DNA of 64,000 nucleotides from Kudoa neothunni (taxonomy: Eukaryota > Animalia > Cnidaria): positions 4,192,490 through 4,256,489 of the forward strand of contig OZ199840.1 of the NCBI GenBank assembly GCA_964304625.1, in the 5' to 3' direction. Made by a program: the position numbers and the translations under genes. The notes beneath the pieces were generated by a model that ran no database searches, was not told the DNA's origin, and saw only the letters and a list, made by a program, of their open reading frames with translations. Positions 12,209 to 14,481 of this stretch are shown here, piece after piece (position 1 is the first letter of the stretch; each line of letters starts with the position of its first letter).

Positions 12209-14481
12209 TTAGGAGAGTCTAGGAGAGCATTTTGAAGATGCGACGTTGGCATTTGATTGAACATTAATAAAATATCTTCCAGAAGGTAGATCATATGAAT
12301 ACACCGCAGAGTATTGAGTATCGAATACAAGATTTTGAGTAGGACAAACAATGGTTATGGGTAGGGTGAATCCAATGTCAATTTTATTGATGAGATATGT
12401 TTGACACACCGAAACATCCATATCATTCACACAATCAACAACACCAACAATCATTCGGCTACAGCGATAGACTGTATTTATTTGATATCTGCCGATGAAG
12501 ATTTGCAATTCGGGGTAGAATTCCCTTCCAGCTATCTCAAAACCGCGCCTTTCTCCGAGGGTTTCATGACACTGAGAGTTAGAAGGGGTGTTTTAATAAC
12601 TTTTGGATAATGTAAAAATTTACAGTAACTGAATCTATAAGAGGAATCTTTCGTGGAAATATGCCACTTACAACTATAGGCATAGAAAAATTGAACGCAA
12701 TTCTTTCTATAAATGCAGATTTCGCATCAATTTAGATTAAAAATCAATAAAATTACTAACCTATATTGATTAGAAGCCACACCGACAATGAAAGAAAAAG
12801 GTCTTGAGATTTCAGTTGAGAAACTTCAGAGATATTTAGCTAAAAATTAGTTATACGAGCATTAAAAGCTATAATAATAATAATTATTGAATCGTAAGAA
12901 AAAAAGTTATCAACAAATAAAAAGAAATAACTTACACTGTGGAATCTTAAGGTGTTGGTGGACAACGACAAGAATGTGTAGGGTTTATCGTAACACTCAA
13001 AGGCAACCTAAATTATAAATCATTCAACCCGAGAACGTAATTTAAAAAAATAATATTTTTTAGAATCAGTAATTCTGTACACGATTCAATGATAAACATT
13101 GCTCTTTGCAATCGATGTCGATTGAATTATTACAAACTTTTCGTATATACTAGAAAAGAAACGAGAAATTTATAGGTGTCTAATGGCTAAACAAGGGGTT
13201 ACCATAAGAGGCAGTCTTAATTTATCGTCAAAGCTTGACAATCGAATTAAAGAGCCGTACGTTATAGGACCTTCCTCGTTGATAAATTCCCCATTAACAC
13301 ATTGAACTAAATACTAATCGATAATTCCAAATCAACATATTTCTACCTTTATGTATATAAATGCCAGTGTATTTTGATGGGTGACAATCAACCGAGTTGT
13401 TATCGACATGGAGATACTTGGTACTAAGACTTTGGGAGCGGAACCTATTTGAAAGGACCACTAATGAACCTGAGAGTATGTTGCCTTGGATAGAAAACAT
13501 CTAATTATTGCATCTACATCAATATCATTAATATACAATCATTTAGTCGCGAAGATTTCGTTTTCTTTTTTGCCGGTTTAGAAATTACCTACAAAAGATT
13601 ATTTTAGCTAGATCGTTTATTTGTTTGTAGAAAAAATAAATACTTTTATAGGATTTGATTCAATTGGGCCAATCATGTGTTCGTTTTCTCCGAGAAATAT
13701 CTAGATTTGTGGTCAGAATCAAATGTGTGTGGTGTATTTTTTATTCACATTTGCTCTCAGTGCAATGAAGCGTCCAAATTCTAGTTCACTAATGTGCGAA
13801 GTAACTGCGGATGCAACTCCCTTTTTATCAAACCGAATAAACGTATGTTTTTAACCAGAGAAATTATTACACTTGTGTCAAAATCATACAATATTTCTGA
13901 TTGATTTTTATTGTTGTTATCCCGCCTTTTATTGTACTTTTTCTTAATTTTTCCAAAATTCTCCTCAAAGTCAGGTGAGGTGTGAGACAATTGGCCTGCT
14001 ATTCTATCCGCACTCTCATTACTTTGATTCGTGGGCGTAATGTTTGGATTTGGGCTGGATTTTTTGTTCTTATCACTTCCAACATTTTCGTTATTACCAG
14101 TGATTTGGAGTGTAACGTAACTGTCAGTCAGGGGAAGGATCGGAGTGTAATTATTTTGGCCAAGAGGCAAACCTCCCAACAACACCATTTTCGCAATTTC
14201 GATCTGTGGTGGGGGATTAAAAAATCTATACCAAAATCAGACCGAACTTTTCATTGACCATTTGATTTAAACCTTCTTTCTTGGCCGTATGATTTGACAG
14301 CACATGTCGAGTAGCTCATACATATTCTGTAGCTGTGGAAATTAGCTTCAAATCCATAATAACTGTCTATGAGGCACTGACATGAGTTGATGGATGGTCC
14401 AATATTAAAAAGTCTCAAATCTTTCTCAGCCTCTCTGCATACTCTCATATAACCACTTTCATCCCACCCAATAGATTCCAT
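12209..14481 (-). CDS. RBPJ: CSL / RBPJ / Su(H) / LAG-1 transcription factor (Notch effector), highly divergent, ~11 exons
   Basis: Spliced motifs appear in the canonical order: AVKSYGQERR|FFNPPPQI (KSYGNEKRFFCPPP); IK|VISKPAKKK; NILSGSLVVLSNRFRSQSLSTKYLHVD (FNRLRSQTVSTRYLHVE); ITYGSLIRL...LP; YIRKV; FEIAGREFYPELQIFIG...TVYRC (IPT domain). All junctions are GT-AG. Confidence 0.93.

Follow-up and report, generated by a model that had tools for sequence, protein, structure and literature searches.

The 64,000 nt stretch of the Kudoa neothunni genome analysed here, referred to as the window (G000:C3:4192490-4256489), comes from an assembly of 40.3 Mb in four contigs with a GC content of 31%. Kudoa is a myxozoan, a fish parasite allied to the jellyfish but reduced, and the tiny introns, the reduced Notch pathway and the AT-rich relative described below all accord with this placement. 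Between positions 12209 and 14481, on the minus strand, it carries an 11-exon gene of the CSL (RBPJ/Su(H)/LAG-1) family, the exons of which join into 1581 nt of continuous frame, or 526 codons plus a stop. All ten introns are of the GT-AG type and between 40 and 170 nt in length. In animals, canonical Notch signalling is regarded as ending obligatorily at CSL in the nucleus, and the groove through which this factor binds the RAM region of Notch is among its most conserved surfaces. The Kudoa gene retains the motifs that contact DNA, and has lost most of the canonical residues at six sites in this groove, all of which differ again in a related species; the comparison suggests that Notch and CSL may be loosely coupled or uncoupled in Kudoa.

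The gene was searched exon by exon, such that scores against protein families and PDB chains refer to single exons. Exon 5, which begins the beta-trefoil domain (BTD), matches LAG-1, RBPJ and Su(H) in PDB with phmmer (E 3e-5 to 1e-3). The final exon scores 29.5 bits against the Pfam model TIG_SUH (PF20144), the cut-off being 24, and has weak matches of 16-17 bits to Su(H) and RBPJ in PDB. In an unbiased BLOSUM62 local alignment, exons 1-6, 8 and 11 are collinear with a canonical, LAG-1-like CSL (P0004). This alignment includes the KSYG.E.R motif of exon 1, the frame of which is open between the first ATG and the donor GTTTAA, as well as the FFNPPP of exon 2, matching FFCPPP in the canonical protein. 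The exon 2 donor, GTAATA at 13870, was picked since that of a related contig, L008, sits at the equivalent place, an in-frame alternative at 13855 being possible. Queried alone, exons 6 and 8 matched no CSL in PDB (phmmer) or in Pfam, and their assignment rests on collinearity with exons 5 and 11 and on the alignment anchors described below. A protein-language-model search weakly places the 35-residue exon 6 (13203-13307) near segments of the MIR/IP3R type; MIR/IP3-receptor segments are also beta-trefoil folds. In the single-exon searches the Pfam BTD and LAG1-DNAbind models missed the gene's own BTD and N-terminal domain (NTD), the LAG1-DNAbind control being uninformative, from which it follows that exon-wise family searches have low sensitivity in this genome.

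A library search with exon 5 recovered seven proteins, comprising six canonical CSLs and one myxozoan-like fragment (P0001) with 73% identity, which was also the only match of a word-index protein search using the open reading frame of the same exon. The fragment is encoded by L008, a 2938 bp contig with a GC content of 22% from the Logan assembly of SRR31175926. This contig carries an ortholog of the window gene that covers the end of exon 2 and exons 3-11, its introns lying at identical positions. Exons 4-8, aligned without gaps, are 54-73% identical between the two. Across the aligned BTD blocks, 70 of 104 residues are shared (67%), the non-synonymous divergence (dN) is 0.24 and synonymous sites are saturated; purifying selection therefore acts on the gene. 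These block identities were taken from anchored gapless blocks, as mafft --addfragments misplaced several of the short exons.

The failure of the Pfam BTD and LAG1-DNAbind models to recognise the exons might be expected of a gene that is decaying or unexpressed, in which unusual residues would represent pseudogene drift. Such an explanation is scarcely credible given that each of the 11 exons is open, in frame and bounded by GT-AG introns, that the DNA-contact motifs are nearly intact, and that an ortholog at saturated synonymous divergence has kept both its intron positions and two thirds of its amino acids.

The DNA-contact motifs KSYGQERRFF, VISKPAKKK and NRFRSQSLST are all encoded, the last of these preserving the N-R-x-R-S-Q..S-T motif of the beta-trefoil. 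Those in the NTD (KSYGNEKRFFCPPP and that of the VISKPSKKK type) align to P0004 in collinear order, with identities at 8 of 16 positions for the KSYG block, and at 6 of 8 and 8 of 9 for the others. Because the contact motifs of both the NTD and BTD are kept, and because the gene is under purifying selection, its product is most likely still a sequence-specific DNA-binding transcription factor, the site bound by the CSL family being GTG(G/A)GAA.

The groove can be compared at six surface sites of the BTD, E260, F261, V263, K275, A284 and Q333, which form the set with which the Kovall laboratory has studied RAM-like binding (PMC9825171, PMC6352735). Mouse RBPJ numbering was derived from PDB chain 3iag_C, which covers RBPJ 53-474, the residue number being the chain index plus 52. 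The register is fixed by two anchors, DGYIHYG/EGPITYG and LPRLIIRKV/LPLM+YIRKV (RBPJ/Kudoa), with a gapless 35 residues and a G-to-P distance of 20 residues in both proteins; the whole segment from EEFTV to LPRLIIRKV in RBPJ aligns with that from GEFIN to the end of the second anchor in Kudoa without gaps. The unbiased local alignment to P0004 yields the identical register for exon 6. Only E260 and F261 of the canonical set are retained in the window. The strand containing Q333 is one residue shorter in Kudoa, and placing a gap before it preserves the pattern of hydrophobic, polar and Phe residues and gives Arg at this site; the gapless register gives Phe.

An earlier interpretation, made from the letters of the window alone and termed here the sequence-only reading, had described a CSL with its contact motifs retained, a beta-trefoil aligning to mouse RBPJ without gaps, F261 kept, V263 replaced by Asn and A284 by Arg, and a non-conserved Q333 in an ambiguous register. 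The peptides it quoted lie on the minus strand exactly where it had put them, and each of these statements is borne out by the window translation and the alignments to canonical CSL, the ambiguity at Q333 being the choice between Arg and Phe. The pocket itself had been called occluded. Bulky or polar residues do occupy the groove sites, but occlusion as such is a prediction from the size of their side chains.

The ortholog comparison that the same reading had proposed gives the more telling result. In L008 the six groove sites are occupied by M, N, I, N, Q and K, none of which matches the residue of the window at the same site, Asn standing even in place of F261. The chance of six pre-specified sites all differing is about 0.001 when the BTD-wide background is used, and about 0.007 when based on the lower identities of the two exons concerned. 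Hence the substitutions in the window point to relaxed constraint rather than to one odd allele: the gene is under constraint, and the groove is not.

Mutations in mouse RBPJ indicate how such changes could affect binding. The substitutions F261A and A284V each abolish binding of L3MBTL3 and reduce that of SHARP by ~45- to 50-fold, V263A and Q333A significantly lower RAM binding, and A284R is listed among the BTD mutants that have been tested (PMC9825171, PMC6352735). Judging by the size of its side chain, and by the effect of the far smaller A284V change, Arg in place of A284 would be expected to hinder canonical docking.

It could be argued that the groove functions normally, either because these substitutions are tolerated in a very divergent protein or because the register is off by one, in which case the usual RAM-like peptides would still bind. 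The whole protein is indeed highly divergent, with conserved blocks ~40% identical to canonical CSL and 57% of canonically invariant BTD positions kept; moreover the hairpin at residues 250-265 is flexible in apo RBPJ, and exons 6 and 8 alone give no significant database match. However, the register is held by two equally spaced anchors, by the matching length of the exon in L008 and by the unbiased local alignment to P0004, the milder A284V change abolishes binding or cuts it ~50-fold in the mouse protein (PMC9825171, PMC6352735), and F261 is gone in L008. A normal groove is accordingly regarded as quite improbable.

No canonical paralogue was found. The gene is the sole genome-wide match to TIG_SUH, the translated exon 5, queried against the genome, matches only itself, and a genome query with a complete canonical CSL (P0004:778-1240) detects nothing beyond exon 5 of this gene. 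The second, canonical CSL that the sequence-only reading had suggested looking for was thus not found by any of these three queries, and CSL is single-copy in the Kudoa genome.

Other components of the pathway are present in the same assembly. A reduced Notch gene, here called mini-Notch, is located around 11.084-11.088 Mb of contig C1, where an LNR domain (G000:C1:11087543-11087650; Pfam 46.6-48.6 bits) is followed on the same strand by an exon with a transmembrane helix and a 180-residue juxtamembrane stretch, by ankyrin repeats (Ank_4, Ank_2, E 1e-7) and by a Q/N/P-rich tail. The ectodomain is tiny, with a few Cys-rich modules and one intact LNR, and NOD/NODP are not recognisable in it; the tail is long and rich in Q, N, P and S. 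Searched against PDB, the ankyrin exon gives only generic ankyrin matches, and word-index protein searches with either the exon carrying the transmembrane helix and juxtamembrane region or the LNR exon found no Notch of a related species. A second LNR match (G000:C3:8541946-8542011; L006 4931-5011), at 21.6 bits, lies in a 27-residue frame with neither a transmembrane helix nor ankyrin repeats nearby and is probably due to chance. Presenilin is represented by at least six matching pieces, the best at E 7e-17, and gamma-secretase therefore keeps its catalytic subunit.

Three Trp residues occur in the juxtamembrane stretch of mini-Notch, in the contexts RSNYWPN, FSGWKPENY and GNWSS. The first is six residues past the transmembrane helix; its -3 position is small and its -1 position aromatic, as in RAM, with the Pro one position early. 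The second, at residue 149 of the exon, has the W-x-P-E-x-aromatic arrangement of WFPEGF, without the small and hydrophobic residues that precede the Trp. By sequence, YWPN and GWKPE are both non-canonical when set beside Phi-W-Phi-P.

Neither of the two partners that the sequence-only reading had proposed searching for, Mastermind and Hes, was detected. No MamL-1 match appears in the genome even at E 10, in a Pfam search of low sensitivity, and the exon-by-exon Pfam search of the genome gave no match to DSL or to Hairy_orange. Only five bHLH matches occur genome-wide, which by eye resemble ARNT/bHLH-PAS, Max, Myc/Mnt, Mad and USF proteins; the five include no Hes-like gene, and no WRPW motif is found near any of them. 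This inventory, with Notch, CSL and presenilin kept and neither MAML nor Hes detected, agrees with Lovy et al. 2025 (EvoDevo, PMC12166595), in which myxozoans are reported to keep Notch, CSL and gamma-secretase and to be without MAML, Hes/Hey, SMRT, CIR and others, and in which the myxozoan Notch ectodomain is described as reduced, the WXP motif being apparently lost in some species.

Table 1. Positions of the CSL exons, of the six groove codons and of other Notch pathway and bHLH genes in Kudoa neothunni. Plain numbers refer to the window; numbers after L004 or L005 refer to those loci.
Feature	Position	Strand	Remarks
CSL exon 1	14273..14481	-	ATG at 14481; N-terminal NTD as far as KSYGQER(R)
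CSL exon 2	13871..14225	-	FFNPPPQIEI, then a weakly conserved NTD stretch, ending LYDFDTS
CSL exon 3	13644..13700	-	IFLGENEHMIGPIESNPIK; collinear with canonical HEIGTFISEHIK; ortholog exon in L008
CSL exon 4	13537..13588	-	DNA-contact motif VISKPAKKK; 8/9 identities to canonical VISKPSKKK
CSL exon 5	13347..13484	-	Start of beta-trefoil, with NRFRSQSLSTKYLHV
CSL exon 6	13203..13306	-	Beta-hairpin and strands lining the RAM/corepressor groove; anchored gapless alignment
CSL exon 7	13081..13149	-	YIRKV...; matches canonical I/K-IRKV right after LPRL
CSL exon 8	12936..13007	-	VAFEC...LSLSTNTLRFHS; contains the Q333 position; L008 has I-K-F there
CSL exon 9	12761..12839	-	End of beta-trefoil, ...SVWLLINI; L008 counterpart ...SIWLVINI; likeness to canonical ASWTIIST by eye only
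CSL exon 10	12624..12706	-	Linker strand ERIAFNFSMPIVVSGIFPRKIPLIDSVT; boundary set via L008 (IPLITSVT) and canonical PVPVVESL; donor GTAAAT
CSL exon 11	12209..12571	-	C-terminal TIG/RHR-C domain and stop codon
Groove site E260	13289-13287	-	E (GAA)
Groove site F261	13286-13284	-	F (TTT)
Groove site V263	13280-13278	-	N (AAC)
Groove site K275	13244-13242	-	R (CGA)
Groove site A284	13217-13215	-	R (AGA)
Groove site Q333	12947-12945 or 12944-12942	-	R (one-residue gap) or F (gapless), respectively; non-Q in both registers
mini-Notch	L004 (G000:C1:11078001-11088000) ~9999-6170	-	N-terminal exon possibly at L005:194-3
mini-Notch, LNR	L004 9710-9408	-	
mini-Notch, transmembrane and juxtamembrane exon	L004 9183-8341	-	
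mini-Notch, ankyrin repeats	L004 8359-7773 and 7136 onward	-	
Presenilin	G000:C1:12121296-12122996	-	
bHLH genes (L009-L013)	G000:C2:5742407; C3:9449348; C1:3847048; C1:14239914; C1:4800736		

The 3' end of the CSL gene differs in two respects between the window and L008. The last intron is 52 nt long in the window (12572-12623) and 33 nt in L008 (1133-1165), where it is in frame and stop-free and its retention would add 11 residues; both last introns read as similar peptides. In addition, the frame of the last exon shifts within the TIG domain at around 1273-1300 of L008, which could reflect a small extra intron, a genuine frameshift or a fault in the assembly.

The groove that in other animals captures the Phi-W-Phi-P peptide of Notch RAM and of RAM-like corepressors has thus lost most of its canonical residues in Kudoa and is not conserved within the lineage. 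On the preferred interpretation, CSL would act largely without canonical Notch docking, as fungal CSL does, mainly as a Notch-independent regulator bound to DNA, and mini-Notch might signal through a weak contact made by its ankyrin repeats alone, through a lineage-specific contact, or by a route independent of CSL. The explanation in which the high-affinity tether between RAM and the BTD has been jointly eroded, in a clade that has also lost Mastermind, Hes/Hey and the known corepressors, is judged to have an even chance of being correct. That Notch and CSL have both been kept but functionally uncoupled in the Kudoa lineage, with CSL standing alone as in fungi and mini-Notch working independently of it, is proposed more tentatively, the balance being tilted somewhat against it. 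From the residues in the groove we infer that Kudoa CSL may have lost RAM binding.

Several observations weigh against this interpretation. The window retains the canonical residue at two of six groove sites, a proportion not below the 57% retention at canonically invariant BTD positions (of 60 such positions across three canonical CSLs, the window keeps 34 and L008 keeps 31), and the groove of the window species, taken alone, is therefore not exceptionally diverged; the weight of the argument lies in the variability between species and in the kind of substitutions, rather than in this count alone. The comparison is of two species, with one relative only. Notch, with one LNR, a transmembrane helix and ankyrin repeats, and presenilin are both kept. 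Since receptor and protease subunit are retained, some Notch output probably exists, and this might still use CSL; the YWPN and GWKPE motifs could likewise represent a rewired RAM. The absence of MAML, DSL and Hes from exon-wise Pfam searches is weak evidence taken alone, the same approach having missed the BTD and NTD of the CSL gene itself.

The main rival explanation is a co-evolved pair, in which Notch would still dock on the beta-trefoil through a changed peptide, either YWPN or GWKPENY, and a changed groove. For instance, the Trp could be stacked, by cation-pi interactions, against the Arg residues that take the places of A284 and Q333, which would preserve the canonical logic with other residues. 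The genome keeps Notch, presenilin and CSL, all of them intact, the Trp motifs occur in the stretch next to the membrane that normally contains RAM, with the W-x-P-E-x-aromatic pattern in one case, and the window species keeps E260 and F261. Furthermore, position 3 of the mouse RAM-like tetrapeptide tolerates substitution (M65A), as positions 1, 2 and 4 do not (PMC9825171), and Hydra, in which the motif is altered to WXF, is reported by Lovy et al. (PMC12166595) to signal through CSL. However, the six groove residues all differ between the two relatives, including F261 to Asn, which would be unexpected of a maintained interface unless the Notch peptide also differs in each species. Neither Trp motif combines a small residue at -3 with a hydrophobic one at -1 and Pro at +2, and Mastermind, a partner in the ternary complex, was not found by the MamL-1 search and is reported absent from myxozoans by Lovy et al. 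(PMC12166595). Because the groove is not conserved between the relatives, a co-evolved RAM is disfavoured, and it is considered rather unlikely.

The erosion of the tether between RAM and the BTD thus remains the preferred reading. The sequence-only reading had gone further in proposing a CSL independent of Notch. A real, single-copy CSL with its contact motifs and an altered groove has been substantiated, but Notch independence must be set against the retention of presenilin and of a Notch with its transmembrane helix, ankyrin repeats and Trp motifs, and is on present evidence no more than plausible. Similarly, the Notch gene that was to be inspected for WxP exists, complete with LNR, transmembrane helix and ankyrin repeats, but has the non-canonical Trp motifs described above.

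The Kudoa protein shares the order of NTD, beta-trefoil and TIG/RHR-C with canonical metazoan CSLs such as mouse RBPJ, Drosophila Su(H) and C. elegans LAG-1 (PDB 3IAG, 5E24, 1TTU), keeps the motifs KSYG.E.RFF.PPP, VISKP.KKK and NR.RSQ..ST.YLHV and, like them, is single-copy in an animal with Notch and presenilin. Unlike them, it has only E260 and F261 left in its groove, and its relative differs from it at all six sites, whereas canonical CSLs are described in PMC9604145 as extremely similar among species. Fungal CSLs have conserved DNA-binding residues, and the residues of their Notch and corepressor pocket are generally not conserved (PMC1973085). The fungal classes F1 and F2, for example Cbf11 and Cbf12 of fission yeast, thus have the same pattern of kept contacts and changed pocket, and likewise no Mastermind or Hes axis. 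Fungi, however, have no Notch, whereas Kudoa is an animal with a secondarily reduced pathway that still includes the receptor. Vertebrate RBPJL is another animal CSL that is reported to be unresponsive to the Notch intracellular domain and that binds the same DNA site. RBPJL is an extra paralogue alongside canonical RBPJ, with a groove that serves Ptf1a; by contrast, the divergent Kudoa protein is the only CSL in its genome.

That myxozoans have CSL and Notch, and have lost MAML and Hes, has already been published; what is new here is the comparison of the groove. In the portion of Lovy et al. 2025 (PMC12166595) available, CSL is given only as present or absent, the RAM-binding groove is not discussed and Kudoa does not appear in the main text, and no study of this groove in myxozoans or other reduced animals came up among the papers searched. 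The value of the comparison is limited for now to a testable hypothesis, rather than a demonstrated uncoupling, drawn from the sequences of two species. It nevertheless gives a concrete handle on the question raised by Lovy et al. 2025 of whether myxozoan Notch signals canonically. A lineage with Notch and CSL and a drifting docking groove would constitute a natural experiment on which parts of the pathway become dispensable after the loss of Mastermind, Hes and the corepressors. If true, the uncoupling would represent a secondary dissolution of the link between Notch and CSL inside the animals, the timing of which could be traced across the Myxozoa.

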